From: Monocercomonoides exilis PA203
Lineage: Eukaryota > Protista > Preaxostyla
DNA: 64,000 nt
Direction: 5' to 3'
Assembly: GCA_001643675.2 (NCBI GenBank)
Contig: LSRY02000004.1
Coordinates: 1,488,001-1,552,000, forward strand
In this document: positions 28,868-64,000 of the stretch, one piece after another
Layout: every line of letters begins with the position of its first letter
Numbering within the stretch: the stretch's first letter is position 1
Notes under the pieces: generated by a model
Told to the model about the DNA's origin: nothing
The model's database searches: none
Seen by the model: only the letters and a program-made list of their open reading frames with translations
Translations under genes and position numbers: made by a program

Positions 28868-31800
28868 TCAAGATGGAACATTCTGTTGGCCATTGTTTTT
28901 CTCTTTTTCATTGATCTTACAAATCAAACTATCATTTGTCTTATCTGATGTATTTTCAATGCAAATTGCATCAGACACAGTGAGCATCACAGCTCCCGGA
29001 GGAAAGAGCTGTATAAACTCTCTCTTCAAATGTAGAAGCGATGGACGCTCGTTCATCTTGCTCGAGAAACATATCTTTACAATTTCTTTAAGTGTTTGTT
29101 TTTGGATTGCTTCGATTTTTGGCCTCTCTCCATTCATAATCTTCTGCCCCGCCACCTCGGCCTCATACTCTCCAAACGGGATCTTCAGCGTCAAGCACTC
29201 CCACAGCATCATCCCAATTGAAAAGGCAACAGATTCCTTTGTTGCCCCCATCTTCTTGTTGATCAACAGCTCGGGCGCCTTCCACCTCAGGCATTCTTTT
29301 TTGTAATCATCCTCGTCCTCAAATGCTGAAGAGGGCAGAGAGTCATCATCATCGTCGTCGCTTGCAGATGTCACAACAGTTGATGAAGAGATAGATGATG
29401 AATCTGAATCATCAGAAGAGAAGTCGGAGCGCATGACGATGCAGATGACCATGTGCTCGGAGAACAACACAATGTGAGGACTCAGATTGGCAAGTGAAGA
29501 GAGAGGATTGTCCATCTCATCAAAGGAGTGGAGAGCAAGGTTGGCCACCCAGAACAGGATTTGGACAGCTGTATATTCTCTCTCCTGAAGCGTGCCAATT
29601 GCCATCTCTTTCTTCTCATTCCTTCCGTGAAGCAGCATGAACAATGAATCCCTCAAATCCACAATCAGTTTCTCATGAGGAGAAGAACATGCCATTGCAT
29701 CCACCAGATTCGACATCGATGAAGTGGTTGGACACAGATCCTCTCTCCGAACAAATGTGGATTCTGTGTCTGAAGTGTCTGTGGTTGAAGTGGTTGAAGT
29801 GGATGGTGATGGTGATCTCTTTCTTGTTTCCTCTTCCTCTTCCACCTTCTCCAATGCCCAATCAGGGATCTTGTCTGAATCTCTCCCCAAAATATATTCG
29901 GTGGAGCCACTTTCGGATAGAAGATGCTCTGATGACTCCGAATGTCCCAAGCTTTTCTCATACACCCTCTTCTTCATCCTCTCTTCATTCTTCTTCTCTG
30001 CTTCCCTCTCAGCTCTTCTCCACTGATCTTCTGGAGACATCTCCATCGTTACCATCTCAAATGCTTTTAGGTCCTTCTTCACTGTGTCTTCCACAATTAC
30101 CTCCAGCTCTTCTGTTCTTTTCTTTTGCTTTCTCCAACGGACAATAAATATAATCAATGCAATCAAAAGTAGTACAACAATTGCGATGCAAACAATAAAT
30201 GCCCACGAAGAGTTTGATCCTTTTTCTCCTTCAGCAAGGTTTTCATTTCCTTTTGGTTCAGATTCACTTGCATTCTTCAGAATGAATGAATTTGTAAAAG
30301 AAGGATTATCAGTAACTCCGAATAGGATATGCACACTCACTTCTATTTCATCTACACAACTACCGATTAGATTTTTTGCCACACTTCCTTCAGCTTCTCT
30401 TTCTGATAAGAATTTATTTGAATCAAAATCGTGTTTTTCAATCTCTTTCTCTTCTCCTTTCCTCTTCACAACTGAGAATGACAGATTGCATGGAACAAGA
30501 AGTATCCCTTTGAATGTCAGCTTCATTCGATCTGTCTCTTCTTTTGCTTCCACACTCTCCAGCACAGGAATAAAGAATGATGAATCCCTTTCTGAAACAA
30601 TCCCTTCAAAACTGCATCCATCATTCAGCATCCAAAATGAAGTATTATCCTTCAATCCATCTCCTCCTTTCAAACTCATCACATTCAATATTCCTGAATC
30701 TGAACAGATGATATTTCTTCTCAATGATAGATATCCTTCAATTGAGGGATTATTGTCAATGAACTCTCCTTTCTCAATTATCACATTTCCTCCACCCATT
30801 GTTATTCCACCTTCTGGTGAATTCCAGATTGTTGTGTCTTTCATCAAAACAGAACTCTTTACAACATCAACAAGAGATCCTGACCATCTGCACATCTCTT
30901 CTTCTTCATTCAAATTCTTTTCATTTCTTTCGTTTGAACTCCCATCATAAATGCAACTGTCCATTTTCACATCCGTGCAATCCTCCAATTTCATCAATTT
31001 CCCTTTTGTGGTCTTTGAGCTGACTCCGCCCATTGTGCAATTTGTCAATTGTATCGTCTTTTTCATTGACAGGCAAGATATCAAAGATTCTTCATTTCTT
31101 TTAACTGTGATATTTTCTGTATTGAAATCTTTAATTGTTAATTGATCACATTCGTTTATATCTATTAGAGAGCATTCTATTGTTGAATTGCAAATCGTTA
31201 ATGAATCAATTACTGATGAAAGCGAAGACGAAAGATGCAATGCAGATTTTTGAAGAATAAGATTTGATATTGTGCATCCATCAAGTTGTAATCCTCCTTT
31301 TTTCATATTAATGATGTGAAATGGAATGTTTGAAAAAGCAGTATTTCCTCCTTCCGTTAATTGTTTTGAGCCGAATGAACAATTCATCACTTCAAGAATC
31401 TCTCCCTCTGGTGTTACAAATGATTCATGTGAAGAGATGAAATTTGAATCAAACACAAAATTCGCTCTCAGCAATGAGACTGTTCCAGTTGTCGTTATCA
31501 ATGCCTCTCTTGTTCTTTCAATTCCTGGTTTCACTTCAACTTCACACATCTCTCTGCTCTTCGAACTCAAACTCATATCCTTCAGATTAACCTCTCCACT
31601 AATCACACTCTTTCCAACAACGAATATCAGACTCAGAATATCTGAGGTCAAATGAGCAAGGCCATGATCAATCGAGGCACATGGAAGTGTGTTTGTTCCA
31701 CACTGTTTTTCGTTTGATCCATTCACGCTGCTCACAATGATCGTGTCACTCTTATGAATCGTCACAAATCCAATAAGATCTGTGTCAACTGTATACTGGC

Positions 31801-34800
31801 ATTCATCAATTCCATATATTGCATTAATTCGTGAATAATGATTCTCTCGAAGATCAAATTGAAATTGGCTTTCATTGATCTGCGATGTGATGTTGTAGCA
31901 TTCAATGAAAATATCATTCCCCACTTTTGCTGTGTTAGCACTGAACTTCATCCCCACAAATGTGAAATCCAATTCTCCTCTTTCCTTTGCTGCTAAATAC
32001 ACTCCTCCTCCTTTTCCTGTGCTATTATTGCAGCTACAATGACTGATTGTTGAGTCAATCATCTTCATTGATCCAGATGCACAGAGCGTAAAGAATATTG
32101 CTCCTCCTTTTTCACTCGTTTCTGCTTTGTCTTCTGTGATGTTGTTCTCATTCACAACCAAACAAAAAATTTTCTCACTTTTTGACTCAAAAACGCTTGG
32201 TCCATTGTCACTTCTCTTCACTCCTGAAAATGATGATTTCTCAATCTCAATATTTGCACATTCTTCACCTCCTTCATTTATCTTTGTTGTTAATTCAGGT
32301 CCTTTGATCAGAAGAAGACATCCTTTGCTTTCATTTAACGACTCCACTCGAACATTCATCAAATGACAAGCAATCAAAGAATCGTGAACAACAAATATAC
32401 TATTTCCAACATTGCATGATTTCATTGACAAACCATTCACTTCCACACTTCCTTCAATAACATCCACAAATACACAATCAAATCCATTGTTCACTCCTGC
32501 TTCTGAATGGAATGAACATTCGCGTATCACCAAATCTCCTCCTTTGTTCGAAATTATTGTTTTGGCTGAGTTGTCAAATCCAGATGTCAGTTGCAGTTGG
32601 ATATTCCTCAATTCGAGGTGAATTTCATTTTCCATGAAATATTCCAGTTGACTTCCAATTGCTTTTTCAAAATTCAATTTGGCTTTAACATTCTCTTCTC
32701 CCACATTTACACTCTTTTTGATTAAATAATTGGACGTGTTGAACGAATCTCGAATTATTGTTGATCTTTCAATTTGAATTGTTTTCAATCCAGTCCCCAT
32801 TTCCATATTTTTAATCCCTTTCCACATTGTGAAACAAGGTTCTTCCTCACTTCCACATCTTGTAACATCAAATCCTTTTGATGAGATAAATATCTCAAAT
32901 GAGCTGTATGGTACGATGAATATGAACAAGTCTTTGTTTGAATGATGACTATCACTTCCAACAAACAAATTATTATCGCCTTTCATTGATGAATAATCAA
33001 ACTTGAATGACTCATTTGTCACAGAATTGTTGAAATCCTTTCCCAAAATGAACACATTCTTTCCAATAGATGCATTGTTGTTCGCAAATGAAACGTTTTC
33101 AAAGAGAAATGGCGTTTCATTCAAACAATTTTGACAATCCAAATACAAGAATCCTCCTTTTCCATTTGTTGTCAAAAGTGAACAAGATGATACATTTGTC
33201 GACTTGATCACTAATTCTTCATTCTCTTGAAATATCACTCTAACAACACCTCCTTCTTTGCTGCCTGTATTTTCAATGTGCGAAAAGTTGGTGTTTTCAA
33301 ACAAAAGAGAAGAAAATATCATCAATGGAGATACACCAAATGAATGCTCCACCAAAGTGCATCCTTGCATTGTGCAATTCAACAGTTTCACTTTGTATTC
33401 TCCTTCACTTTCTCCTTCATTCACATTTCCTGAGGAAAGTGAAAATAAAAATAATGAGACCGATGATTTCACATCTGAAATCGTGACAAAGTTTAATCCA
33501 ACCGTCTTCCCAGTCGATTTGATCAAGGAAAAACAAATTGTACTTTGCTTTCCTCCAACCACATTCATCGCGCAGTTCTTCATGTGCAACTCTCCATTTT
33601 GGGTGCTTGATTCGATCACTGATGTGATTGTTTTGCTAAAACTCGAAGGTACAACAATCCCAATGAACTTCATTTCTGTCGGTGATGTAGATTTCAGAAT
33701 ACATTCTTCAGATCCACTCACTTCTGTTTGGCATTCTAACTCCACAATTGTCTCAGTTCTTGCCTTCATGAACATTCCACCCACATTCACACACCCAGTT
33801 ATATTCGATTTTGAGCACAGAATTATCTCCTTTTTAACATTCAGCGTTCTCTTCAAACGCCCCATCCCATAATTCACATTCAAACATGGAGCCTTTTCCA
33901 GACCACAATACATCTTCTCTACTCCAATTACTCCATCAACAAATACAGAATCAGCTGTATATCCGTCCAAAAATATAAACAGGTCCACATACCAATTTCT
34001 AAACATTTGCGTTCTATCGCTCCCAAATACGGAGTTGTCTTTCTGAGTGATGCTTCTCATGAAGTCGAACAAGGGCTCTTTCACAGAAGCAACAAGGGAT
34101 TCGCACACAAAATACATATCTCTTCCGACACTGGCCTTGTTGCCTGAAAACACGATATTGGTGATGGAAAAGGAGGATTCTGACACTTGTGAGCCTTCAT
34201 TGAACTCGATCATGAGAGCACCGCCTCTTCCTCCAGAACTTGTATCCTCGCTCACAGAGCAGCTGGAGAAGGTGGAATCACTCACCGAAAATGCATTGTC
34301 AGAGGCAGATGAGGCGAATGAGATGCACCCGCCATTGGTGGGAGTCTGTTGGTGTTGTGGAACTGAGTCGATGCTAGTGATGGTGCAGTTGGTGAGGGAG
34401 AGGGAGAGGGCAGGGGAGGTGGAGGAGGAGAGGACACAGCTGGTGGGGGCTGCAGTGGAGGTGATGTCGGTGATGTTGGAGGAGTTGAGAGTGAGGGGTG
34501 CTGTGAGAGAGGTGAGGTGGAAGATGCTTTGGCTGTTGAGGGTGAGACTGGTGATTGCTGTGTGGTTGAGGGCGAGGGAGCCAGCAGTGAGGAAGAAGAG
34601 AGGTGTGGAGATTGATGATGAAGATGAGGTTGTTCCGGTGATAGTGGTTGTGTTGAGGCTGAGGGAAGGGGAGTTTTCAGAGAGGTGGAAGAGGATGGGG
34701 GTGATAAGATTTGTGGAGTTGTGGGCGATGGCGACTGCAGAGATTGCGAGGGAACCCTGAGTCTGTTGGAAGAGGGCAGACGAGGCAGATGGATCTGGTG

Positions 34801-37048
34801 AAGAAGATGTTGTTGATGATGATGAGGATGAAAATGATGATGCTGATTGTGATGACTGTGAATGTGAGTTTGATGGCTGGGGAATGCCATCAGAGGATAT
34901 GATGGTAGTAGTTGTTCCATTTCCAGTGATTTTTGTATCAGATGCGAAGAAAATGAGTGTTTGAATAGGGATGAAAGTGGAATCGAGGAGGTTGAGGGAG
35001 GCGTCTTGGAGTGGAATGAAGTAGCTGAGGGCATATTCGATGGTGGCACATGGGATCCGTCCTTGTCTACCACATGCATCGGTATCAACACCGCTGTTGG
35101 CTACAATTTTGTTCTGGTTAATGAGAGGTATCCAGCCATTATACACGGGATTATCAGCTGTATTTTTATTCCATACTCTGTTTATTGGGGTTGTTGAGCA
35201 GCATTGCTGGAACGGGGATTGGGTAATACTACTGCCACCGAAGAACACATCGTTTCCTCTGCCATTTGCTGCGCTATTACAATCAAAGTCACAAAATGAC
35301 ATAAATAAATTCCCATTCATCCAGGAATACGTCATTTCCATATATATTCCAGCTCCACCATAAGTTGTTGTTGATTTCAATTTATTGTTGATGAACTGGC
35401 ATTCTTCAATTAAAAACTGACTTAATTCACTTCCTGGAGGACGTGCAAAAGTAACAGCACCAGTTGAATCTCCTCCGGAATTTGCAATACACTCACATTT
35501 GGAAAATATGAATTTCGCACTAGATGGCATTTTACTGAACCAGAAATACCAGCCAATTCCACACCAACTTGTTATTTTGCAATGTTCAACTTTGTTTTCT
35601 GAAATACAATAAATAGAAAGCGATTGGGGATTAGAAATGCAAGTTGCTCCTCCATGTGCTGCTAGACATTTTGAAAAATTGGATTTTGTGATATTAATAT
35701 TTGATAAACTTTCAAAATATAATGCCCCACCATAAGCATTGTTTGAACAGTTATTGAATAAGCAAGAAGTGATTGTCAGATTCGCATTTGTGCAGTTTAC
35801 AAGAAGGGCACCTCCATTATCACTTCCACTATTTGAGTTATTCCATTCGCACCATTCAAAGCGATGGTTATTTACATCGAACGAAGTCAATCTTCCCGGG
35901 GTTTTTCTTTGGGTTTCAGTTCCCACATGAACCACAGGATCATTTGACAAAGAGCGTGTTTGGTGGAGGAAAGATGCATTGAAGGCAGAGAGAGAGGTGG
36001 AGGGGCTGTTGAGGTTTGGGAGAATGACACCATCGATGGGATTGTGGGTGTGGAGGAAGATGGTGGAGTGGATGGAAAGTGATGAGTGAAGAGAGAAGGA
36101 GGGGGTTGCATTGATGTTGGTGTTGGTGGTTGTAGAAGAAGTGGTTGAGGTGGTTGAGGTGAATGGGTTGAGTGAGTGTGAGGGAAGGGATGGAAGTGAT
36201 AGAGGGGATTGGGGAGATGAGATGTTGGAGAAGAGGGTGTTTGAGAGATGGAGATTGAGGTGGATTTGGAGGTGAGGATGGGATTGGTGATGGATATGGA
36301 GAGGGGAAGGGGAAGAGGAAATGGAAGGAGAAGGGGAAGAGGAAGGGGAAGGGGAAGAAAAAGAAGAGGAAGAGGATGGGGATGAGGATGAGAAAGATGA
36401 AGGAGAAGAGGAAAGGGAAGGAGAAGGAGAAGGAGAAGGGGAAGAGAGGGAAGAAGGAGAAAAAAGGAAAGGCTGGGTGAGGGAGATGAAAGAGGAGAAA
36501 GAGGAGTGGGAGATGGAGAAGGAGGCAGGGATTGGGGAGTGGACATTATGGAGGAGATTGTTTGGGGTGGAGAAGAGGGGGAAGGAAAAGATGGCAGGTT
36601 GAGGGGTGATGAGGGAGAAGTTTGTGAGGGCGAGGGAGGCATGGGCAGAGAGGAAAAGCGGAGATTTTGCTGCTGGATTGACATAGCAAGTGGAGGAGCA
36701 GATAGTGGCAGCGGAGTGGTATTGGGCAGCGAGGAGTTGACAACCAGTGAGAGGGATGATGTTGAGATGAGTCATACACAAGGAGGCGTTGATGAGGGCG
36801 AGGCTTGTCTGAACTCCACAGATGGGATCACCAGTGACTTTAATAGCTTTCTCTAACGGAATGCCAAAAATTTTGCTATACTTTCCAATTTCATTTTCAA
36901 TGTTAATTTTGCCTTTCTGAACCTCTTCGTTCATTTCTAGTTGAACTTGTCTTTCAGAAATGTTCATGCAATTACAGCAGTGAACAATAAGAAATAACAA
37001 TGCAGTAAAATTGTATGCTACCCTCGTATGTGCACAGAATCTCATCAT
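28868..37048 (-). CDS. Giant single-pass surface receptor-like protein: signal peptide, Pmp-like GGA/FxxN beta-helix modules capped by CGxxxxPC, TM segment, cytoplasmic TKL-like pseudokinase
   Basis: 2726-aa intronless ORF with GGALLV, GGALYF, GGAIFF, FSGNKA and FSANTA motifs and 4 CG-x4/5-PC motifs. TM segment WAFIVCIAIVVLLLIALIIFIV followed by RWRKQKK. Kinase C-lobe LRWKAPELL...FSIGMMLWECLTLKIPF...ERP...CFSSKMNERPS, without HRD or DFG. Confidence 0.85.
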   Translation of the reverse strand: MMRFCAHTRVAYNFTALLFLIVHCCNCMNISERQVQLEMNEEVQKGKINIENEIGKYSKIFGIPLEKAIKVTGDPICGVQTSLALINASLCMTHLNIIPLTGCQLLAAQYHSAATICSSTCYVNPAAKSPLFLSAHASLALTNFSLITPQPAIFSFPLFSTPNNLLHNVHSPIPASFSISHSSFSSFISLTQPFLFSPSSLSSPSPSPSPSLSSSPSSFSSSSPSSSSSFSSPSPSSSPSPSISSSPSPLHIHHQSHPHLQIHLNLHLSNTLFSNISSPQSPLSLPSLPSHSLNPFTSTTSTTSSTTTNTNINATPSFSLHSSLSIHSTIFLHTHNPIDGVILPNLNSPSTSLSAFNASFLHQTRSLSNDPVVHVGTETQRKTPGRLTSFDVNNHRFEWCEWNNSNSGSDNGGALLVNCTNANLTITSCLFNNCSNNAYGGALYFESLSNINITKSNFSKCLAAHGGATCISNPQSLSIYCISENKVEHCKITSWCGIGWYFWFSKMPSSAKFIFSKCECIANSGGDSTGAVTFARPPGSELSQFLIEECQFINNKLKSTTTYGGAGIYMEMTYSWMNGNLFMSFCDFDCNSAANGRGNDVFFGGSSITQSPFQQCCSTTPINRVWNKNTADNPVYNGWIPLINQNKIVANSGVDTDACGRQGRIPCATIEYALSYFIPLQDASLNLLDSTFIPIQTLIFFASDTKITGNGTTTTIISSDGIPQPSNSHSQSSQSASSFSSSSSSTTSSSPDPSASSALFQQTQGSLAISAVAIAHNSTNLITPILFHLSENSPSLSLNTTTITGTTSSSSSISTPLFFLTAGSLALNHTAITSLTLNSQSIFHLTSLTAPLTLNSSNITDITSTAAPTSCVLSSSTSPALSLSLTNCTITSIDSVPQHQQTPTNGGCISFASSASDNAFSVSDSTFSSCSVSEDTSSGGRGGALMIEFNEGSQVSESSFSITNIVFSGNKASVGRDMYFVCESLVASVKEPLFDFMRSITQKDNSVFGSDRTQMFRNWYVDLFIFLDGYTADSVFVDGVIGVEKMYCGLEKAPCLNVNYGMGRLKRTLNVKKEIILCSKSNITGCVNVGGMFMKARTETIVELECQTEVSGSEECILKSTSPTEMKFIGIVVPSSFSKTITSVIESSTQNGELHMKNCAMNVVGGKQSTICFSLIKSTGKTVGLNFVTISDVKSSVSLFLFSLSSGNVNEGESEGEYKVKLLNCTMQGCTLVEHSFGVSPLMIFSSLLFENTNFSHIENTGSKEGGVVRVIFQENEELVIKSTNVSSCSLLTTNGKGGFLYLDCQNCLNETPFLFENVSFANNNASIGKNVFILGKDFNNSVTNESFKFDYSSMKGDNNLFVGSDSHHSNKDLFIFIVPYSSFEIFISSKGFDVTRCGSEEEPCFTMWKGIKNMEMGTGLKTIQIERSTIIRDSFNTSNYLIKKSVNVGEENVKAKLNFEKAIGSQLEYFMENEIHLELRNIQLQLTSGFDNSAKTIISNKGGDLVIRECSFHSEAGVNNGFDCVFVDVIEGSVEVNGLSMKSCNVGNSIFVVHDSLIACHLMNVRVESLNESKGCLLLIKGPELTTKINEGGEECANIEIEKSSFSGVKRSDNGPSVFESKSEKIFCLVVNENNITEDKAETSEKGGAIFFTLCASGSMKMIDSTISHCSCNNSTGKGGGVYLAAKERGELDFTFVGMKFSANTAKVGNDIFIECYNITSQINESQFQFDLRENHYSRINAIYGIDECQYTVDTDLIGFVTIHKSDTIIVSSVNGSNEKQCGTNTLPCASIDHGLAHLTSDILSLIFVVGKSVISGEVNLKDMSLSSKSREMCEVEVKPGIERTREALITTTGTVSLLRANFVFDSNFISSHESFVTPEGEILEVMNCSFGSKQLTEGGNTAFSNIPFHIINMKKGGLQLDGCTISNLILQKSALHLSSSLSSVIDSLTICNSTIECSLIDINECDQLTIKDFNTENITVKRNEESLISCLSMKKTIQLTNCTMGGVSSKTTKGKLMKLEDCTDVKMDSCIYDGSSNERNEKNLNEEEEMCRWSGSLVDVVKSSVLMKDTTIWNSPEGGITMGGGNVIIEKGEFIDNNPSIEGYLSLRRNIICSDSGILNVMSLKGGDGLKDNTSFWMLNDGCSFEGIVSERDSSFFIPVLESVEAKEETDRMKLTFKGILLVPCNLSFSVVKRKGEEKEIEKHDFDSNKFLSEREAEGSVAKNLIGSCVDEIEVSVHILFGVTDNPSFTNSFILKNASESEPKGNENLAEGEKGSNSSWAFIVCIAIVVLLLIALIIFIVRWRKQKKRTEELEVIVEDTVKKDLKAFEMVTMEMSPEDQWRRAEREAEKKNEERMKKRVYEKSLGHSESSEHLLSESGSTEYILGRDSDKIPDWALEKVEEEEETRKRSPSPSTSTTSTTDTSDTESTFVRREDLCPTTSSMSNLVDAMACSSPHEKLIVDLRDSLFMLLHGRNEKKEMAIGTLQEREYTAVQILFWVANLALHSFDEMDNPLSSLANLSPHIVLFSEHMVICIVMRSDFSSDDSDSSSISSSTVVTSASDDDDDDSLPSSAFEDEDDYKKECLRWKAPELLINKKMGATKESVAFSIGMMLWECLTLKIPFGEYEAEVAGQKIMNGERPKIEAIQKQTLKEIVKICFSSKMNERPSLLHLKREFIQLFPPGAVMLTVSDAICIENTSDKTNDSLICKINEKEKNNGQQNVPS

Positions 37049-37532
37049 GGAAGTGGATGAAGTAAAAAAAGGATAAAGTTAAAAACTACCACGCACCCAT
37101 TTTATTAAAATCAAATTGTCATTTTTTTGATAGAATTGATTTGAAGCATTTTTTTTTTAAATGTTATTATATGTTTTGCATTCACATTGCATCTTTTTTA
37201 ATTATTATCACTTTGACAAAGTTTTTATTTTATTTTTTTTTTTTCGGAATTGATATTTCTTGAAACATTTTGAAATTACTGAAAAGATATACACAATAAA
37301 TTTGATTTAATATTTATCATTCCGTTGAGATAATGTAACTTATTTTTTCTTTCAATTAAAAAATCGAAAATTTACTGGAAGGATGATGAAAATGAATTTT
37401 ATAAAGAAAAGACTCAACTAATTTTTTGTTATTTTCATAATCGATTTGAAACGTTTAAGAAAAAATAAGAAAAAAAAATGTTTATTTAAAAATAGAACTT
37501 TTATATTAAAGAAAATTTTCTTTTTTTCAAAA

Positions 37533-37606
37533 GCCCACCTAGCTCAGTTTGGTAGAGCGTTCGGCTTTTAACCGAACGGTCAAGGGTTCGAGTCCCTTGG
37601 TGGGCG
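37533..37606 (+). tRNA. tRNA-Lys(TTT)
   Basis: Acceptor GCCCACC/GGTGGGC; D arm GCTC/GAGC; anticodon arm TTCGG-CTTTTAA-CCGAA; T arm AAGGG-TTCGAGT-CCCTT; T-run terminator. Confidence 0.97.
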
Positions 37607-38216
37607 TTAATTTTTTCTGAAACTTCAAAAAAGATCAAAATAATAAAAAAAAATTAATATAAAAAATATCATAATTACCAAAAAAGTCTTGATAAAATTT
37701 TCATGATGAATTAAATCATAAAAAAATATGAATAAATAATTGATATTATTAACTATTCGAAGATTATAAACTTTTCAACAATTTTCAAATCTTTCTGTAA
37801 TGATAAAACCATTGTCATTTGAATTAATGACAATCGTTGAATACACCACAATTTCAAAAAATTAAGGAGGTGGATTGTCATTCAATTAAAAAATCCTTTC
37901 TCGGATAAACAGTTTTGAACAATCAAAAGATGTGTTTTTTTCAAACAAAACGCAAAATAATTACTTTCTTTGATATCTTTGTTAATCTTGTGTAAAAACG
38001 TTGTATAACTTCAAGGTGTAAGTAATGTCAGCTTTCTTCCACTTTTGTCTTGAATTATTTTCTACCAATTACAAAAATCGATAAAGAATATTTTTTTTAG
38101 TAAATAAAAAACCTATGTCAAAAGAAAAGAAAAATTATCAATATTTAAAAAGGAAACAATTATTGAAGAAAGTTGTGTTTGAATCTTATTTCACATCGTC
38201 CCATATGTGATATTTT

Positions 38217-40319: not shown

Positions 40320-40799
40320 TTTTTTTTCTTTTGTTATTATGTGATATCCTCGCTTTTCACATTTGCTTTGTTTCATGTATATCTTCGAATGTGTGTTATG
40401 TTTATTGTATTATTACTTTTCCTTTTTGTGTTATTGTGTTAATTTTTCATTTTCATCGTTAAACATTTATTATCTTTGATATGAATCCGTAATATTTATC
40501 GTTAATAAGTAATTTTATTTCCTTTTTTTTTTAACTTTTTGTTTTCTTTTGTTTTCCATAGTTTCATTGCGTTATGTCTTTCTTTCTTTCTCAATGAATG
40601 CGTTGAAATCCCATCAAGAGTTCAATGCACGTCAGCATTTACCGCGCATATTTGGGATTATGTAGTTATTTTCTTTTATTTTCTATTGTAAAGATATGAA
40701 TGTTCAATATTAATAGAAATCAAACACGAAAAGATTTGAAGCGATTGAAAGCAAAAACGTGAAGTGACTAAAAAATAACACTTATTCAAACAAAATGTT

Positions 40800-52117: not shown

Positions 52118-52151
<34 letters not shown>

Positions 52152-52178
52152 ATTTTTTTTTAATTTTTTTTTTTTTTG
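52025..52178. repeat. T-rich (TTTTTC)n / poly-T tract downstream of the kinase gene
   Basis: Direct reading. Confidence 0.85.
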
Positions 52179-54110: not shown

Positions 54111-54578
54111 TTATTTGGAGAGGAATTATTCATTTCGAAGAAAAAAGAATAATAATTGTTGAAAAACAAATGTTAGATATTTTTTTTAACGAAAAAATAT
54201 TATTGTTGAGAATTTTAACTTTTTCGTGTTCTTTTATTTATATTCGAAGTGAATGTTCAAATGGAAATTTTTTATTGTTAAAACTTTATTTCGAAAATTG
54301 TCACTTATTTTTAATATTGCATTATAACGAAAAAACTATAATGATATAAAAGTTGTTAAAATTTCGAACAAAATGTTGTTTTATTTTCTAATGCAAAAAT
54401 TATGCACCAAATGATATTTTTAAAATCAAAAATTTTCTATCCATATAAATTCGGCATTCCCAAAATATTAAATGTTTTCTTTTTTTAATCTATCTAGTAT
54501 AAATAATCTGTTCACTGATCGATTTATTGAAGAGGGGCAGGAATTGCACAAAAAACAGTCAAAAGCATTATTTCTTTC

Positions 54579-57500
54579 ATGTTTTCTTTCATTTTGCTTC
54601 TTGTTCTTTATGGAGCAATTTGTGCCTCGGATATCCCCGAAAAAAATGATGTGGATCAGAGAGAGTTATTTGTTTGTCACAGCTCAGAAATAAAATGCAA
54701 TCACAATTGCAAAAAAGTTTCTTCAAATCACTGTTTCACAAGCATTCTGGTGCACAAAGGCACAAGCCTGGCCACGTTTATTGTTGGGCAAAATGTTTCG
54801 GTGAACTTTTCTGAAATAACTTTTCAGCACATTGGCCAGAACTGTGCTCTTTCTTTAAAGCTTTCACACAGTTTTCTTTTGCACTGTAATTTATTCCTCC
54901 AAGAAAATACAAATGCGCCAGACTTGTCACTTCTAGAAAGCAGCCTTTCCATTAGAAACATTAGTTTAACTCCCATCAACAAAAAGATGGAAATTCCTCC
55001 ATTGGCCAGTGTTCTTCCATCGTTTGACTCCACATCATGCTCTTCACTCGAACTGTCGCATTCTTCCTTTTCATCATTTCCAATGCTTTCTTGTCCCTTT
55101 TTGTCTGCACCATTGCTATCATTTGTTCATGTGTGGGACTCTTCATTTGCAAACATTACAGCCAACTTCTCCAAATATCAATCGCAACATAATCCAGAAA
55201 AACAATCTTCCATCTTATGCAGCTGTTATTTTCACACGGTTGACAATGTGTTTGATGGGGGCATTGCCCAATCCATCAATGATCCTTCCCATTCGCTCAT
55301 TTCATGCAACAACACCTTAATTTCTTGCTTCCGCTCTGCCAATGACAATTACACAAACAATAAACAAATGGATCACATCAAAATAAAAGAAGGAGATCAC
55401 TTATTCAAAGATTGTGAGTGGCATTCCTCTGGTTCTGATTATACTGGTGGTGCAATTTCTTTTGAAAATCAGTTAACAAGTTCAATTGTTATTGATTGCT
55501 GTGTTTTTGAAAATTGTTTTTCTTTTGACAAAGGTGGGACCCTGTACACTGTTAATATAAAAAAACAAGTTATTAAAAATTCTCGAATTGAAAACTCAAC
55601 AAGTTGTTACGGAGGTGGAATTTTCTGTGGTCAAATAGCAAGTGCTATTTCGTTTTTTAACATTAGTAATTGTAAATGCAATGCAACAACAGGTGTTGGT
55701 GGAGGAATGAGTTGGAGATACGCAGGAAAACATGTGACCTTGGATAACGATTCACTCTCATTTGGTGCAATGTTATTCAACTATTCGTTCAATGGTTGTG
55801 ACTCAATTTGCACATATGGTGGTGGACTGTCGATATATGAGCCGATCAACGAATATCCGGTTCTTCGTGAATGTTTGTATCAAAAATGCAATTCACGGCA
55901 ATATGGAGGAGGATTGTATTACAATGTGCATCAATTGACGCCTGAAAATGCAACACTTTTGTTTTATTGCCTTTTTGTCAATAATGTGTCACCAAATGGG
56001 GATGATATCTATTTTGGTGATGGTTATTTCCGCCTTCAAGCAAATCCATTATGCGGATGCGCATCACAGACAAAATCTTCGACAAGGCTTGTCATATACA
56101 CAGATCAGCTGCGCCAACACTCTGAATGGCTCGAGACGCATGCAGGCATTTATACTGATGGAACCAAAGGGAACAACAGATCAGCAAGCTGTGGGGTATC
56201 TGAAGGCAATCCGTGCAGGACCATAGCATATTCTTTTGCCATGCTACTCCGCTACAATTCATCTTCAATTATTCTGTTGAACTCAACTTTTGACAGCGAG
56301 CCAGACACAATCAATGTTGGGACAAGCACCAGACAGATAACGGGAATCGGGCGAGAAGAAGTGATGCTTAGCTCTGCGCATCTTCCAAGCGCTCATCCGT
56401 TGTTCGCCGTTTCAACAGGTTCACTTACAGCTGCCAATTTCACTATTGTGCACGCTCCATCAAGTGGTAGTTCTGTTCTGTTTTTCTTGAGCTCAACAGG
56501 GACAATGACTCTTGATTCCATCAGTGTGAAACGATCGACAGCAGATGCTTTAGTACTTTTTCAGGCTGCCCTGCTTTGCTGCAGAAATGGAGGCGTAGCA
56601 ACAATTTGCAACACCAATATGGCTAACTTTTCGTTTTCTGGCTGTCCTGCAATACTCTGCGATCATTCGAGCATGACTTGTGCGAATTGCTCTCTCTCAA
56701 GCATGAAGTCGGAACGTGACAGCGGTGCTGGGATCAATATCTCTGTTGGTGCGCAAAACTCGTTTGTATCAAACAACACAACGCTAGTTGGGTGCGAGTG
56801 CTCGAAAGGCAACGGCGGAGGTATCTCAATAGTCCACCAAAGTGGAGGCAGAATCCGAGTCGAAGGTTTAGCAGGATTTGCCACTTTTTCAGCATGCACA
56901 GTTCCTAAAGACGAGGCATCCAAAGGAAAAGGTGGAGGGATTTTCATCCACACAAAAGAATATATCTGTGATGCGTGCCTATCCAAAGTATCATTTGCTG
57001 GTTGCGATGGCTGGAAAGGGAAATGTGTGTTTTACGATGCAGTCGAGCTCAGTGCTGTTGTGAAGAACACCACATTTGACTTCAATATGGATGAAATGAA
57101 TGACGACGATCTTATGGGGTTTGAGGCTGACTTCCGCGCACAGCCTGTTCCGTTAAAAGCTTATTTACTCCAAGAGGACGGATGTGGGTGCGTAGGAGGC
57201 TTAAACAAGAGAGATTTCAAAGGTTGTGGATCGTCTGTGTATCCTTGTGAAACAATCAGCTGGGTTGTGAACTTAAAGTTCCCATCCCAAAAGCGGGAAA
57301 TCCAACTTCATGACAGCTTTCGATGGACAGAACACATCACCATGGATCAGAGAGAATGGGACGTTAGATGCATTGAAAGAGGCGGAAAAATAAATGTGGA
57401 TCTCTCCCAAAATCAAAAGGCTGTGAGTATGATTGAGACAAAGAACCTCGTAAGCATATCCAACATGAGCTTTTTCGCAGCTTCTTCAATCGAAGGCATC

Positions 57501-60500
57501 ATTGAGTGCTTGATGCTGTGCACAGACAGTATTCTGACTGTTACGAATTGCTCGTTGAAAATGGAAAGCGGAAGCATTGGCACATCTTTTGCAGAGGTTG
57601 CAAAAGGAAAGCTATTTTGGTATCATTCGAAATTGCATCAGAGAGTATTAGCACTTCGCACCTTATTATTGTCTCTGGGAGCAATTCAAAAGCATTTGTG
57701 CAATGCTCAGAGTTTAAGGAGTTGAGAGGGACTGAAAGCAATGCGCTCATCTATGTTTGCATGGGTGGAACAGTTGAAATGGAGAACAACACAATGACTT
57801 CATGCGAAATGAAAAACTCGGCAATAGTTGAAAACGAGGAAGGAAACATCCTGCTTGCATCAAATGTGACATTTTCTGCAATCGAGCGCACAGAAGGAGA
57901 CGGAAGCTGTATCCATTGTTCATGCGTTGATGGGCAAGCGAGTGCTTCGACAATTAAAAAGTGCTTATTTGAGAATTGCTCAGTCAAGGAAACTAACAGT
58001 GGAGGAGGCGCACTGAAATGCGACTTGGGCGTCGGGGCAATACTGCTTGTTGAAGAATGTCAATTCGGGAATTGCTCTGCCCCAAGCTCTGATACAGTTG
58101 GTTACGGTGGAGGCACCTATCTAGACTTGCACGAAGCAGATATTGCATTCAAGATATTAGCACCATTGTTCAGTACATCTCTGCCAAACAGCGCATATTA
58201 CGGAGATGATGTATTTGTGCAATCACCAAACTTAACCACAAGCATTACAAACGAAACAATGCCATTTGCACACAGTTCAGGCACAGAAAAAGTCAACTCT
58301 TTGCAGGGCTTCGATGGAGAGAACAGAGTGAATGCAATTCCACTTATCTATTTCATTTGCGATGCTGGCAGCACTGTTCATGCAGATTCATCAAAGGGCC
58401 TGAATGTTGCTCCATGCGGTTTCACAGACTATCCGTGCCAGACTCTGAGTTACTCATTTTCAAAGCAGATGACAAAGGCAAAAGATGTCAGCCTTTCCGT
58501 TTCATTCGAGCTGCGTGAAGAATTGGTGCTTTCTGATCAATACGGAATTCACATAAGTGGCGTTGGCTCATGTTCCTTGTTTATTGTTCACGAATCTAAT
58601 TCTTCACAGCCCGGAGTGATAACAATGAGCGAAAATTGCCCAACTGCTGTGATGGCATTTATCAGGTTCAGACTGCCAGATAAGCTCCAAACACATTCCT
58701 CTTTTGCCTGCCAAAACTCACAAGGTGAATTAGTGCTACAAGATTCCATTTTTGAGACCCAAGATGAATCACCCCCTCTTTCTTATAATTTAATCTCAGC
58801 ATTGTCTGGGACCCTCACCATCAGCACAGTTGCAGCTGCAAACATTCCTCTGCGAGATGCTTCATTTCTTGTTGCAACAGGCTTTGCTTCAGTGCACATG
58901 AAATCAGCATCGTTGGTGGAAGTGGAAACCACGTCACAACATGGACTGATAAGCCTTTCATCGCAGAATGCTTCTCTTTTCATTGACGATTCTACACTAT
59001 TGTCGCAGCATGCCAGTCAAGATTTCACCTTAATTTTCTCTGATAACGCAAATGCGATCGATGTCTCAAACACATCAATGAAGGGATTTGCAAATAATAT
59101 GAAAAATGGCTCGGCCATATGTTGCACAGTGAATGACCAGCAAAGGTTAAGAATTGAAGGTGGCACGTTTGAGTCATGCAGAGCAGATGGGGGCACGGAG
59201 GAGGGATATATGTCCGAGGGAATTACGGAGGAAAAGTGACAATTGGTAATGCAACCAATGCACCCACGATGTTTGCCAAATGCACATCCACAGAAATTGG
59301 TTCCAGCGGAGGACTAGGCGGCGGAATATATTTGCACATGACTGATAGCTCAGCAGGAGTTATAATGAGCAGCATTTCGTTTGCTGAATGCAACGCGACA
59401 AGAGGAGGAAGTTGCGTGTTTGTGGAAGCGATAAATTTATCCTCCGCAATTACCAGCGAATCCCTGAATTTTGAGTTCGAGAAAAGCAGTAATTCATCTT
59501 TCGGCGAGTTAGCCGGCTTTGAAGGAGGCAATACAGCATTTGCCATCCCGCTGGTGCTATTCCTCCGAAATTTCACTTCACCAGCATTCATTAGCAACAC
59601 TGGCACAGACTACAGAATGTGTGGTTATAAAGATTATCCTTGTCAAACCATTAACTATGCTGGAACAGCAAGATATGGCAGCGCAAAAGGAAAGGTGAGG
59701 TTGGCAAAAGAATTCGAATTTTCCAATCGCATTGCGTTTACACAACAAGAGATGGAAATCGATGCTGAGGATGACTCGGAAAAATTAACTGTTCGAAGTG
59801 ACGGCCTTGGAGAAGGAAGTGGCTTAATTGAGGCTAGAGTTGATGTTTCGTTCACAGGAATATCGTTCAGCATTCCTTTGGCCTTCACTATCAGCCGCAA
59901 TTGCTTGCTATTGTGCAGCGGATCCGTGTTGACTGTGGCTGATTGCATAACGGAAGCCATCAGCTCAGGAGTGTCGTACTCGATTGCTTGTTGCACCAAT
60001 GGAAAACTTGTGCTGAACAATTTCACAGTTCTGAATATCGAATTTGCAACGGCAGCTGCCATCAAAGTCAGTGGCAGAGAAGCAGAAGCAGAGTTAATTT
60101 GTTTGAGCATCGACGGAGCAAAAACAGATGAAGTCTCTGGATTGATTGTCGCCAATAATGGAGGAGTGATAGGGCTTGAGGAATCTTTGATAAACTGCAC
60201 AACAACAATTTTCATGAATCATTCGATGCTATTTGTGGGCGAGTCGTCGTCGTTAACTGCAACCAATTCATCTTTTACAGGTGCAGCAAGAAGAAACGGG
60301 AACGGAGGTGCCATCTCAGGAACCATCTGCGATGAAGCTGCATGTACTGTGAGCGGGTGTAATTTTTCGTCAAATGCATGCATTGATGGCCATTCAAAAG
60401 GAGGAAGCATGATAGTGAATGTGAGAAAAGGAGGGAAATTATTGTTTGATTCAAACAAGGTGACGAACAGCAAAGTTGATGCAGAAAATGGCTTCGGTGG

Positions 60501-63500
60501 AGGGCTGCACTTGAGCTTTGAAGATTTGGAAGTAAATTACTCGATGATTGCTATTTCATTCTCGGGAAATCAGGCACGCTTGGGCTCTGACGTTTTTTTG
60601 ATCTGTCCTTCACCTCGGATAATGATCGATAAGAACAAGTGGGCCGGCTCTGCACAGCCAGGAGATGCTAATCTTAAAACAATGTGGGTCATCGACGACG
60701 AAAGCTATCCCTCAATTAATGTTAGCATGTTAAAATACTTGTTTGTGTCGAACGATGAAATTGTATTTGTCGATAGAGAAGAAAGCAGCAACAATGCTGG
60801 ATGTGGAAACAGCAACAATCCTTGTCAAGAATTGGCGTTTGGATTTTCTCAAATGAGCAGTATAAAAACAACACTGAGCATATTGAAGTCTGCTGATTTG
60901 AGTCAGCCAATTCATTGCGAAGACGATCCTTTGACTATCTGTGGTATTGAAGAAATCAACTCGGCTCTTAAAGTGATGAATAATGGCCGCATTACATTGC
61001 TGAAAGGCTCGCAAGCAACGTATCTGTCTGTTTCTTCTCTAAATATAACGCTTCAGACAACCGCAGAACAACTCCTGCATGATGTATTTATTGAAGCAGC
61101 TGTTGGAAAAGTGTATTTTGTCTCGTGCATCTTTGGTGATCCTGATGGCGTTGAAAAGCGCTGCTGCGTGTGGATAGTGAAAGGGAATGGAAGTTCCATT
61201 AGTTTTGGCAATGTTCTTGTCGCAAAGCTACTATTTCAGTCGAGCTGTGGGTTGGCATCTATAAACAGCGGTTCGCTAGTAATCGACAAATCTACTGTTG
61301 ACACAGTGTCTACCTCAAGTGATAGCCTGATTGTCTGCATTAACGAAGCGAGCTCACGGATAAATAATACAAATATTACAACATACAAAACAGCCAAAGG
61401 CTCATTCCATAAAGTCTCCGGTTCAGGGAGCAATGTAATATCTGGACATTGCATGCTAAGTGGATGCTCATCTGCAAATGGCAACGGAGGAGCTGTTAGC
61501 TGTAAGTTGAGCGAAAATGGCCAATTCTTGATAAATGGGGCTATCATAACATGCTGCAACGTAAACGAAGGCAATGGCAAAGGAGGAGGAGTATTCATGC
61601 ATTTGAAAGACCCATACGGGACTTTTTTATTCGAAGAGATCGATTTCAATCAAAACAACGGCTATGAGGGGCGTGATATGTTCGTTGATTGCAAAAGCTT
61701 AAATGAGAGCATTTATCCTTCAAACATCAAAGTTCCGTTTTACAACAGCGAGGGCATCGAAATTGTTGATATCAAGGGAAGCGACAGAACACACTTTTCT
61801 GATTCTGTGGATCTTGCCATGTTTTTGTATCAAAAGCAGGCAACCAGCATCTATGTATCTAAAACAGGGTACGACATGATCGGATGCGGAGCAGAAGAAT
61901 ATCCGTGCTTTTCATTCAAAAGAGGAGCAACAAATTTAAATGAGCAGTCTTTCGAAAAGGAGATATTGATTGGCACGGAAACATATATTCAAGAGCCTGT
62001 TGATGTTTCTTCTTTTTTGATATCTTCTTCAACAAGTTCAAAAGCAAGCATTTTGTTCAAGCCTGAAATAATCGGAAATAGCAGAAATGCAATTCTCGAA
62101 GCCACACACCAACTAGCCGTGATATTAATTTCGTTTCATATCCCTTCAGCATTTTCTTCAAATGTCGACTGCCTCATATTTGCATCAGACACCCAGCTCA
62201 GAATCGCAAATAGTTCCTTCATCCAGAACGGAACAGATCCACTCTTGTTTGCGCTAATTCGGACATCTGGAGGGTCCGTTGAAGTGAACTCCTGCAATAT
62301 TTCGGCGATAACTGCCAGATTTACTCCATTTGCCATTTCAGGTAACCTCTATCTTGCAGATGCGCAATTATCGCAACTAAAAGTACCAGAGTCCCTTAGA
62401 GGAGGGGCACTTGACGTTTGCCTCTCAGAAGATAATGCTGTTTCGCTGAAGACAAGCGATCTTTCGTTTTGTGAATGCTCTCGAAATGAAGGAAAAGGAG
62501 GATTTTTGTATCTGGACTGCACTCTGTCCGCTGCTTCTCAGCCTCTAAAAATTGATGCAATTACTGTTAGCAGTAATATGGCACATATTGGCAAAAACAT
62601 TTTTTTGGAAAGCAAAAATTTAAATGAGAGTGTGACGCTGAATTCTTTTGCATTTGATTATTACAAAATAATGAATGATAGCAATGCCTTTGCTGGGCAC
62701 GATTCAATTATTGGAGATGCTGATCTCTTCATGTTTGTTGTTGAGTACAGAAGCTCAAATATATATGTGGCACACACAGGCTTTGATGTGAGGAGATGCG
62801 GAAGTAAATTTGAGCCATGCAAAACGGCTTGGGCTGGCATGCAGCATTTGACTGGAGAGAACCAATTCCTCCAGTTGCTCATCACCAAGGAAACTATAAT
62901 TCAAGATGCTTATGACGTAAGCGGCTATATTTTGGAAGGATACTCACAAACATCCGAATTAACAAATCACACATTGTTTTTTTCGAAAAAAAATGAAGGT
63001 GAATCCGATCCGTTTCTTCTCAACTCTAGATATTTGACAATCAGAGATTTGCTTGTATTTGTTTCTTCGGATTTCGGAAACAGTAAAGGCGGAGTGATTA
63101 TGAACGAAAACGGAACCATCGAAGTTTTGCGGAGCGGCTTTTCTTCAGAAGCAACAATCGGAACTGAAAGTAATTGCTCATTTCTGTTGATGAAGCGAGG
63201 ATACCTCCGAGTGTCGCAATTTGTTGTGTCGTCGTGTAACGTTGGAAATAATATTTTTGCTGTTTCAAACAATAGCGAATGCACCTTTAATGAAATGACA
63301 ATATCGAACGTGAACATAACTGAAGCGTGCATATGTCTGGTTAATTACTCATCAGTGGCAAGCGTCAATGAGTTCGCTGCTGGAACAATAACTGTGGAAA
63401 ATTCTTCATTTACTAGCATTGCCAGAAGTGATAACGGCTCATGTATTATCGCATCTTCATCTGAAGGAGGAATTGTCAAGATCAGAAATTGTTCATTCAG

Positions 63501-64000
63501 AGAATGCAGGTCAAGAGATAGCGAAAGAGGTGGGATGGCATTTTTAAATCTTGGTGTAAATTCATCGTTCACATTTTTGTCGTCGTCGATAATTCAAAGC
63601 TTTTGCAGTGAAGAATATGGCAAAGGAGGAGGAACCTATCTTTTATTCGGCGAAGTTGGCGATCTGAATTTTCTTTTCCAAAACTCAACATTTAGTGGAA
63701 ATTCCGCGTTTATTGGGCGAGATATCTTTATTGAATGTTTTAGCCTTTCTTCTCAAATCAATGAAAGCCAGTTTAGATTGGATCTTCGGGAAAGTGAGTA
63801 TCACAGATCAAATGCCATTTACGGAATAGACAAGACAGACCATGCTTCAACACCTTTTGATTTAATGGAACTCATTACAATGTTCCAGAATGATCGTATT
63901 GTTGTTTCATCAAATTTTGAAGCAGGCGGAGATAATAGCAAACAATGTGGAAAGGTTAATTATCCTTGTTTGACAATCGATTATGGCCTGAAGCATGTGA
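54579..64000 (+). CDS. Second giant Pmp-like beta-helix surface protein (paralog of 28868-37048), interrupted by two 1-nt frameshifts (~57610, ~59190) and continuing beyond the window; pseudogene or sequencing errors
   Basis: Signal peptide and 8 CGxxxxPC modules across three frames. The third frame appears open from 59194 to the window end (no stop-terminated ORF is listed in that frame). It contains DIFIECFSLSSQINESQFRLDLRESEYHRSNAIYGID, matching DIFIECYNITSQINESQFQFDLRENHYSRINAIYGID of the paralog. Confidence 0.8.

Follow-up and report, generated by a model that had tools for sequence, protein, structure and literature searches.

Two giant genes of Monocercomonoides exilis PA203, here called A and B, lie in a 64,000-nucleotide stretch of contig LSRY02000004.1 (positions 1,488,001 to 1,552,000, referred to as the window), and the question that they raise is what kind of protein they encode. 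M. exilis, a flagellate, is the model eukaryote without mitochondria and a bacterivorous gut commensal. In two papers on its genome the largest gene family goes simply under the name 'protein tyrosine kinases' (332 genes, of which 320 are TKL) and is mentioned as a source of 'unclassified repeats'. No description of the ectodomain architecture was found in full-text searches of the literature. The family members that we tested are predicted to be giant surface proteins in which serial beta-helix domains stand on a kinase remnant. We consider it probable, at roughly 0.75, that these are oxymonad-specific serial beta-helix surface receptors with a dead-kinase tail and a distal part that binds ligands.

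The open reading frame of gene A is a 100% match to M. exilis MONOS_9012, and its features are listed with those of gene B in Table 1. A preliminary description of the window called it intronless, which holds for the open reading frame and not for the annotation, as the public MONOS_9012 model has 2133 aa, begins at residue 507 of the frame and has two in-frame stretches cut out as introns. Three other open reading frames in the window, at 40800-49337(-), 124-3366(-) and 9984-18290(+), were considered as further family members and rejected, with 0 of 3 matching the module HMM.

Table 1. Features of genes A and B and of the inverted repeat; numbers above 64000 are extended coordinates beyond the window.
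Feature	Position	Strand	Residues (aa)	Remarks
Gene A (MONOS_9012)	28868..37048	-	2726	Single ORF; signal-like N-terminus, Ser/Thr/Pro-rich stretches, N-terminal domain, 4 beta-helix modules (types K-L-E-T), transmembrane span, pseudokinase tail (predicted layout)
Gene A Ser/Thr/Pro-rich (>=60%) low-complexity stretch	36047..36544	-	169-334	Near distal end
Gene A N-terminal ('tip') domain	35075..35911	-	380-658	GG[AG] coil motifs ~26-28 aa apart
Gene A module 1	33908..35074	-	389 in length	Cap CGRQGRIPC, type K
Gene A second Ser/Thr/Pro-rich stretch			707-771	Within module 1
Gene A module 2	32858..33907	-	350 in length	Cap CGLEKAPC, type L
Gene A module 3	31703..32857	-	385 in length	Cap CGSEEEPC, constant penultimate type E; modelled beta-helix
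Gene A module 4 and membrane-proximal region	30215..31702	-	496 in length	Cap CGTNTLPC, constant last type T
Gene A transmembrane span (predicted)	30137..30205	-	~2282-2304	Then RWRKQKK
Gene A cytoplasmic tail (predicted)	28871..30136	-		Acidic and Ser-rich stretches, kinase C-lobe remnant
Gene A kinase C-lobe remnant	29018-29311	-	2580-2677
Gene B	54579..64000	+	~4075	Runs on to 66804, 2.8 kb past the window; signal peptide, N-domain, 8 modules, transmembrane span, tail (predicted layout)
Gene B module starts	56190, 57225, 58415, 59620, 60802, 61885, 62797, 63946	+
Gene B frame break 1	57614	+		T4 here vs T5 in inverted twin
Gene B frame break 2	59188	+		G5 here vs G6 in inverted twin
Inverted repeat (15.4 kb), left arm	54457-69851			In window: 54457..64000; 99.76% identity between arms
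Inverted repeat, right arm	70226-85620

Gene B had been taken as one open frame, and this did not hold: in this assembly it occupies three frames (54579-57722, 57506-59236 and 59173 onwards) separated by the two shifts in Table 1. At both breaks the difference is one base in a homopolymer, and the 99.76% identical inverted twin has neither break; the repeat has a spacer of 374 bp and two tail-to-tail copies of gene B within it. These breaks bear on whether the family is non-functional, a decaying swarm of duplicated 'unclassified repeats' with gene B a pseudogene. RepeatModeler repeats do overlap the family genes (PMC8767320), gene B is broken twice in the window and a few copies contain stops, but more than 100 scored loci lie in stop-free open frames of 2000-4300 aa and dN/dS values are 0.25-0.31. 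The gene B breaks are moreover of the one-base homopolymer type, missing from the twin arm, in an assembly that is nanopore-based (PMC8767320), and we find decay scarcely credible.

The building unit of both proteins is a module opened by a cap, CG-x4/5-PC-x-T/S-I/L. A regex scan of gene A returns CGRQGRIPC, CGLEKAPC, CGSEEEPC and CGTNTLPC at aa 659, 1048, 1398 and 1783, and of gene B CGVSEGNPC, CGSSVYPC, CGFTDYPC, CGYKDYPC, CGNSNNPC, CGAEEYPC, CGSKFEPC and CGKVNYPC, which are exactly the lists of four and eight CG-x4/5-PC caps given before; the chance expectation is 0.0275 caps per protein (shuffled protein A). The 'at least 8' caps ascribed to gene B can be replaced by exactly 8, with none further up to the gene end at 66804. 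One module has 304-394 aa, except that the last extends for ~500 aa up to the membrane, and in module 4 of gene A the module profile is matched by the first ~235 residues only. Modules are contiguous head to tail and homologous to each other (blastp; module HMM). The claim that the last two caps and their flanks are homologous between the paralogues agrees with blastp, which pairs module 4 of A with module 8 of B (35.5% identity, E 2e-88) and module 3 with module 7 (34.7%, E 2e-71); module 2 pairs with module 6 too (27%, E 6e-40). The N-terminal domains of A and B share 24% identity.

Module 3 of gene A (type E), modelled alone, is predicted to form a right-handed parallel beta-helix (pLDDT 83.1, pTM 0.84), in line with the beta-solenoid proposed earlier. 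VIA-align superposes this model (residues 1-380) on PfbA, PL6 lyases, polygalacturonase, AlgE4, tailspikes and Vag8 with Z scores of 20-23 and rmsd 3.4-4.0 A over 290-315 residues. The top Foldseek rows are of the same fold class, with weak E-values (>=4.5e-3), and in the ESM Atlas a beta-helix S-layer protein is matched at TM 0.74. For the types modelled, E alone and L + E as a pair, the predicted structures confirm a right-handed parallel beta-helix (pectin-lyase-like) fold. Both members of the pair adopt it in the model, with a junction pLDDT of 30-44 and a pTM of 0.53; their relative orientation is therefore given without confidence, and the model does not show the 'stalk' of the preliminary description. 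Sequence searches point to no relative of the ectodomain: Pfam and NCBIfam scans at E up to 10 with all parts of A and the pieces of B gave nothing significant, likewise for ten further diverse members, and PDB sequence searches with the ectodomain and the module profile gave a best E of 0.19, to a pentapeptide-repeat protein.

In structure the nearest neighbours of the module are PL6 alginate lyases, GH28 polygalacturonases, the AlgE4 epimerase and phage depolymerases, as might be expected of surface-anchored enzyme arrays in which every module acts as a lyase or hydrolase on glycans from bacteria or the diet. The invariant or near-invariant columns over 58 modules hold Cys, Gly, Pro, Leu, Phe, Asn, Ala, Ile and a single Asp, and this contains no shared acidic/basic catalytic set. 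There is no match to a CAZy-type Pfam family, and the adhesins PfbA and Vag8 score equal to the enzymes. We judge a catalytic role to be distinctly unlikely.

The motifs that had suggested kinship with chlamydial Pmp proteins are GGA[ILV] and FxxN. The first is found 4 times in the gene A ectodomain against 0.085 expected (0-2 per module), whereas FxxN shows no overall enrichment (11 vs 8.6 expected), one FxxN per module occupying a near-invariant column, F305/N308. True Pmp homologues of bacterial origin, subsequently fused to a eukaryotic tail, would account for the GGA[ILV] enrichment and for the single conserved FxxN-A-x2-G coil in each module, and such an origin has been proposed for trichomonad Pmp-like proteins. 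Faint matches occur at that coil. A single module gives E 4.3 with Chlam_PMP (PF02415), its 8.4 bits falling short of the cut-off of 20.6, and POMP_repeat (TIGR01376) reaches 11.5 bits where its cut-off is 15; neither model matches in the remaining modules, gene B or ten further members. Language-model neighbours carry Chlam_PMP, DUF1565 and Beta_helix, DUF1565 proteins being among these neighbours. Against this origin, both Pmp models stay under cut-off, there are one or two coils per 350-aa module where Pmps have tandem runs, and the Pmp middle domain and autotransporter barrel are missing: Pfam scans found no autotransporter families, and the C-terminus consists of one hydrophobic span and the kinase remnant. 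With the likeness confined to about two coils per module, we do not retain the Pmp kinship and regard a bacterial Pmp origin as very improbable. Only one family model is passed at all, DUF1565 (PF07602), and by one protein (G000 C2:990306-990782), which matches from its CGQQNSPC cap at 23.4 bits against a gathering cut-off of 20.3; this protein matches the module HMM at E 6e-38, and A, B and ten other members gave no DUF1565 hit in Pfam. The nearest sequence link of the modules would be to DUF1565, through this one member only.

Both N-termini are hydrophobic, clearly so in B (judged on hydrophobicity only), and each protein has one cluster of hydrophobic 21-mer windows (aa 2279-2306 of A, 2103-2130 of the third piece of B) followed by RWRKQKK. 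From these predictions, A and B have the signal sequence, single span and large ectodomain of a type I single-span membrane receptor. In gene A (161-257) and in members P0032, P0127 and P0137 the Pfam kinase match is limited to profile positions 156-258 of 258, and the best solved relative of the tail is ILK, over the C-lobe only (~86 residues, E 2e-5). Regex scans of the tails of A and B found no GxGxxG, VAIK, HRD or DFG, APE being retained. The conserved ~440-aa tail retains the C-lobe of a TKL-type kinase only and, since the catalytic motifs are gone, it should be unable to phosphorylate. An active protein kinase (PF00069/PF07714) was accordingly rejected as an assignment for the tail.

Genes A and B belong to a very large type I membrane protein family, oxymonad-specific among the matches listed. 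For gene A a search at E<=1e-3 gives 410 paralogues, 1500-4770 aa long, and all 120 listed are from M. exilis. First-look counts in the genome gave 4613 module and 1403 tail candidates; those scored (107 modules, 108 tails) are all strong, most in open frames of 2000-4300 aa, and we put the family at several hundred to about a thousand genes in M. exilis. The module profile matches 2403 clusters at 50% identity, including proteins of Blattamonas nauphoetae, the origins being those listed for matches with E below 1e-10 in a search that extended to 1e-3.

Module number varies among paralogues, as had been proposed: the 120 carry 2-9 modules, correlated with protein length (0.85), and members of 7.7-8.0 kaa carry up to 14, a maximum of at least 14, all counts from public gene models being lower bounds because such models are often cut at the N-terminus. 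A tree of 492 modules requires 33 position-label changes against ~292 (286-299) in shuffles, in agreement with the expected position-specific clades. Clade T comprises 122 of 122 last modules and clade E 121 of 122 penultimate modules, with module 7 of gene B standing alone. The middle modules are of ~10 types in a fixed order, each present or absent, giving architectures such as KLET, KLSET, KSET, MET, MYET, MGFySET and MGFyDaSET that all end in E-T and in which no type is repeated. Length therefore varies by cassette and not, as first described, by the copy number of one unit. As none of the three results on clades, module number and fold went against it (0/3), the preliminary description is supported in part.

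Pairwise identity climbs from tip to base, with medians of 22-24% at the tip and 73-78% at the base, in agreement with the fixed base and variable tip that had been suggested. Mean pairwise identity is 0.38 for the N-domain, 0.34 for the first module, 0.54 for r3, 0.78 for r2, 0.73 for r1 and 0.70 for the tail, the r1 and r2 values being inflated as the 120 paralogues were picked by similarity to the proximal modules of gene A. The ratio dN/dS is 0.25 at r2 and 0.31 at r1 (26 paralogues). Modules E and T, which lie next to the membrane, are nearly constant under purifying selection, as is the tail, and the distal modules diverge strongly. The ectodomains of A and B are 36-37% identical (pS 0.75) and their tails ~85-89% (85% with pS 0.28), with a sharp switch at the membrane span. 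The eight tails nearest to that of gene A among the tail matches scored are all on its own contig (8/8 on C36), and the nearest E modules among the module matches scored are mostly on other contigs. Ectodomain and tail, from these comparisons, differ in history, tails being most alike within a chromosome and ectodomain modules not.

Such a pattern might also be produced by a variant surface coat, in which cells in the host gut would change their antigens or surface by expressing one or few genes at once, as with Giardia VSPs. A coat of this type would fit with hundreds of paralogues that differ strongly in their outer part and hardly at all in span and tail, with inverted duplicates, and with a homogenisation of tails within chromosomes that points to frequent recombination. 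A conserved kinase-remnant tail of 440 aa, however, far exceeds the needs of an anchor, the constant proximal modules are under purifying selection, and M. exilis is described as a commensal (PMC6759080). We think a variant coat unlikely, and favour receptors that bind ligands with their distal part.

As such receptors, the proteins would be placed on the cell surface, where each module would add ~5 nm of rigid beta-helix. Ligand binding may be the task of the distal helices and tip, with glycans of gut bacteria taken as prey or of host mucus as the likeliest targets, because polysaccharide-binding proteins usually build on this fold and M. exilis feeds on bacteria. The dead-kinase tail could act as a docking platform for signalling or uptake. 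We infer a function in adhesion or recognition. More tentatively, the family may be a recognition repertoire of about a thousand genes driven by recombination, distal cassettes being swapped or dropped to give new specificities for gut bacteria or host glycans, with the tail kept uniform on each chromosome by gene conversion and feeding one signalling or uptake pathway; this is possible, though we hold it doubtful. If true, this protist would have its own equivalent of the diversified innate receptor families, with a fold and a dead-kinase tail not known in that role. Should the build hold family-wide, both the kinome count of M. exilis and the picture of its contact with its surroundings would change. 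With its cassette grammar, its gradient of conservation from tip to base and its tails that are uniform by chromosome, the family offers a tractable case for receptor diversification by domain loss, gain and gene conversion.

Several known systems share parts of this design. Bacterial and archaeal DUF1565 proteins, of the pectin-lyase-like clan, resemble the modules in having an N-terminal cap, G-x4-P-x-x-T-I, followed by a parallel beta-helix, but in M. exilis two cysteines flank the cap and the domains are arranged serially in a membrane protein of a eukaryote. Among pseudokinase scaffolds, ILK, which is catalytically inactive too, is like the M. exilis tail in the C-lobe; that tail has no recognisable N-lobe. 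Giardia VSPs, which are small CXXC proteins with a 5-residue tail, likewise have many paralogues, variable ectodomains and a near-invariant span and tail. The transmembrane kinases of Entamoeba (for example the EhTMKB1 family, PMC2880585; surveyed in PMC10463195) are a large protist-specific single-span family whose variable ectodomains carry Cys and whose kinase-type domain is cytoplasmic, but their ectodomains are CXXC-rich repeats, in contrast to beta-helix domains with a kinase C-lobe alone. Chlamydial Pmps act as adhesins (PMC10715098, PMC11166332) and share the right-handed beta-helix, GGA(I/L/V)/FxxN coils and polymorphic paralogues, although they are autotransporters that possess one long passenger helix together with a Pmp middle domain and a beta-barrel, and the M. 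exilis family lacks all of these. The trichomonad Pmp-like proteins (Handrich et al. 2019, PMC6701047) are matched by Chlam_PMP; their genes number from about two dozen to 48, and their short tails carry endocytic motifs. A role in adhesion has been proposed for them (PMC6701047). As in M. exilis, these are an expanded family of metamonad type I membrane proteins, with a beta-helix-type ectodomain containing GGA and FxxN and with one C-terminal transmembrane span in place of the bacterial anchor. The M. exilis family differs in having 2-14 or more capped domains of 304-394 aa, several hundred to about a thousand genes and a 440-aa kinase remnant, and it provides a eukaryotic parallel to the bacterial beta-helix adhesins and to the Pmp-like proteins of trichomonads.

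Genes A and B encode members of a family of giant proteins in which a variable chain of modules is carried on a constant base that ends in a dead kinase, bearing out the architecture proposed in the preliminary description. A regex scan recovered the same caps (the CG-x4/5-PC motif opening each module) as named there, four in gene A (residues 659, 1048, 1398, and 1783) and eight in gene B, against a chance rate of 0.0275 per protein in shuffled sequence. Gene A is identical (100%, protein search) to MONOS_9012. The public model of MONOS_9012 starts at an internal methionine (ORF residue 507) and excises two stretches, apparently bounded by GT...AG, as introns; the ORF reads through both and the second aligns with gene B, such that the introns are probably over-predicted and the start truncated.

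Searches used the 82-Mb assembly, in which the window is C36:1488001-1552000, and 30 kb of DNA past the window edge was added to read the end of gene B. No caps follow the eighth, only the transmembrane (TM) span and the tail (the cytoplasmic region beyond it), and gene B thus has exactly eight modules; the earlier count holds but is not open-ended. Gene B is not a single open frame, being split over three frames in the present assembly. It lies wholly within one arm of a 15.4-kb inverted repeat (genome G000, C36:1542457-1573620) that carries two gene B copies tail-to-tail. Ragged arm-end alignment aside, nearly all differences between the arms are one-base homopolymer lengths, the exceptions being a minor alteration where a T-run meets an A-run (62983-62986) and a single substitution further downstream. 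Because of these homopolymer differences, because arm 2 is in frame at both arm 1 breaks (with its own shifts elsewhere), and because the assembly is nanopore-based, with homopolymer errors mentioned by its authors (PMC8767320), the breaks are probably assembly errors rather than decay. Contig C44 contains an inverted paralogous pair ~11 kb apart and 86% identical to the gene B pair, suggesting that the palindrome is real and predates duplication of the locus.

Coordinates of genes, repeat arms, and paralogous features (extended coordinates continue the window numbering into downstream DNA)
Feature	Coordinates	Strand	Remarks
ORF	124-3366	-	1080 aa; 31% Ser, long poly-Ser runs
ORF	9984-18290	+	2768 aa; DENN and dDENN domains
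Gene A (MONOS_9012)	28868-37048	-	
Annotated intron, MONOS_9012	35273-35329	-	19 aa, in frame
Annotated intron, MONOS_9012	30353-30556	-	68 aa, in frame
ORF	40800-49337	-	2845 aa; 22% Glu, 12% Lys
ORF between genes A and B	50511-51986	+	Pkinase E 6.7e-52
Gene B	54579-66804 (extended)	+	~4075 codons; frame shifts at 57614 and 59188
Inverted repeat, arm 1	54457-69851 (extended)		Holds gene B
Inverted repeat, spacer			374 bp between arms
Inverted repeat, arm 2	70226-85620 (extended)		99.76% identical to arm 1
Paralogous pair, first copy	C44:485382-486379	+	Inverted orientation
Paralogous pair, second copy	C44:496598-497595	-	Inverted orientation
Nearest tails to that of gene A	C36: 937222, 1342499, 1248762, 1239420, 592651, 899077, 1553593		89-92% identity

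The cap-to-cap pieces of both genes are mutually homologous in all-against-all blastp comparisons, and the homology described for the last two modules is seen at 35.5% (A_m4/B_m8) and 34.7% (A_m3/B_m7) identity, with A_m2/B_m6 at 27%. An HMM of 58 aligned modules (alignment A1) shows that modules adjoin head to tail without linkers, with the match to the last module confined to approximately its first 235 positions. Three Gly-Gly or Gly positions, together with the cap C-G...P-C, are invariant in this alignment, and a single F..N.A motif is nearly so. Module number is not constant among paralogs, and 121 proteins split with the HMM have 2-9 modules, correlating with protein length (r=0.85).

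Modules form position-specific clades, as a FastTree phylogeny of 492 modules requires only 33 changes of the label 'rank from C-terminus', versus 286-299 in shuffles. All last modules (122/122) fall in a single clade (cap CGTNTLPC) and 121 penultimate modules of A-type members form another (cap CGSEEEPC), with gene B's penultimate module branching off singly. The middle modules sort into about ten types. Written as type strings, all architectures finish with E-T (the penultimate and last types), for example KLET (gene A), KLSET, KSET, MET, MYET, MGFySET, and MGFyDaSET. Because type order is constant and no type occurs twice, length variation reflects the presence or absence of distinct cassettes; the proposed length variation stands, although not as copy number of one unit. 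The middle modules of gene B are singletons in this sample, which places gene B in a divergent subfamily.

Module 3 of gene A, modeled with AlphaFold2 on alignment A1 (pLDDT 83.1, pTM 0.84), is all-beta with ~30 short strands and a short N-terminal helix immediately after the cap. Exhaustive comparison with known structures (Z 20-23 over 290-315 residues, rmsd 3.4-4.0 Å, residues 1-380 covered) matches it to right-handed parallel beta-helices, including the pneumococcal adhesin PfbA, PL6 alginate lyases, polygalacturonases, AlgE4, phage tailspikes, and the Vag8 passenger, in agreement with the beta-solenoid anticipated earlier. The top Foldseek rows are in the same fold class with weak E-values (at least 4.5e-3), and the ESM Atlas gives a TM-score of 0.74 to a beta-helix S-layer protein. 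Each module is thus predicted to be a complete capped beta-helix domain. Modules 2 and 3 modeled together form two such helices whose mutual orientation is unpredicted (junction pLDDT 30-44, pTM 0.53), and a rigid stalk of stacked modules is plausible. Action of the modules as enzymes is less likely because they share no polar catalytic set, although it is possible within single types.

In gene A and three other members the tail aligns with the Pfam kinase model (258 positions) solely at positions 156-258. The Gly-loop, VAIK, HRD, and DFG motifs are absent and APE is kept, and the closest solved relative is integrin-linked kinase (86 C-lobe residues); by its motifs the tail is a dead kinase. 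The ORF between genes A and B encodes most of a genuine kinase domain (profile positions 66-263) unrelated to these tails. The glutamate-rich ORF, with a coiled-coil-like middle and a Ser/Pro-rich end, has neither a Pfam family nor a module match and explains the pronounced skew, AT as well as GC, at 44-48 kb; the DENN and poly-Ser ORFs are outside the beta-helix family.

Among paralogs picked by likeness to gene A's proximal modules, mean (median) pairwise identities are 0.38 (0.24) for the divergent N-terminal domain, 0.34 (0.22) for the first module, 0.54 (0.51) for the third from last, 0.78 (0.78) for the penultimate, 0.73 (0.73) for the last, and 0.70 (0.70) for the tail. Since dN/dS is 0.25 and 0.31 in the penultimate and last modules of 26 paralogs, the loci appear to be working genes. 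Genes A and B share 36-37% identity in the ectodomain (synonymous difference 0.75) and 85% in the tail (89% by blastp; synonymous difference 0.28), with identity leaping to 95-100% right past the TM span. The eight tails nearest to gene A's, including gene B's, are all on C36 (best among matches listed) and the nearest penultimate modules are mostly on other contigs (among the matches listed), which argues for different tail and ectodomain histories. The simplest reading would be tail gene conversion within the chromosome, or ectodomain exchange, and the same-contig likeness may indicate that tails evolve in concert within each chromosome.

A word search identified 410 family proteins (1500-4770 aa, E<=1e-3), and all of the best 120 are from M. 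exilis. At first look, one module has 4613 candidate matches in the genome and the tail has 1403, and all those scored (107 and 108, respectively) are strong; most scored loci fall in stop-free open frames of 2000-4300 aa, whose lengths seem by eye to cluster near 2330, 2700, 3060, 3600-3800, and 4100-4300 aa. Searching 1.84 billion representatives with the module profile gave 2403 clusters at E<=1e-3 (305 at E<=1e-30), and those looked up comprise M. exilis proteins as long as 7986 aa together with proteins from a second oxymonad, Blattamonas nauphoetae. In the giant members, full module starts number 11-14 and the tails are short. UniRef names of the Blattamonas relatives P0245, P0159, and P0121 (4.3-6.6 kaa) include 'PPM-type phosphatase domain-containing' as well as 'Adhesin-like protein'; a real phosphatase domain would mean that these ectodomain modules are also coupled to cytoplasmic signaling domains of other kinds.

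Family proteins may be exposed on the cell surface, each module adding perhaps ~5 nm, with distal parts that could bind glycans or bacteria and a tail that might work as a scaffold for signaling or uptake. Two genome papers label the family 'the largest gene family ... protein tyrosine kinases', with 332 genes (320 TKL), and remark on its overlap with unclassified repeats (PMC6759080, PMC8767320); full-text literature searches found no published account of the ectodomain. The suggested kinship to chlamydial Pmp proteins is not sustained, with Chlam_PMP at E 4.3 and POMP_repeat at 11.5 bits (cut-off 15), both at the sole GGA coil of module 3, and no autotransporter found. DUF1565 is the only family model that any member passes (one paralog, 23.4 bits, cut-off 20.3), the match beginning exactly at a cap; language-model neighbors bearing DUF1565, Chlam_PMP, and Beta_helix provide a lead only. 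A G-x4-P-F-x-T-I cap is common where bacterial beta-helix proteins begin, and the family cap presumably resembles it. The closest eukaryotic analog is the trichomonad Pmp-like family, which likewise has a beta-helix ectodomain on a single C-terminal TM span, and expression of a trichomonad Pmp-like protein raises adhesion (PMC6701047).
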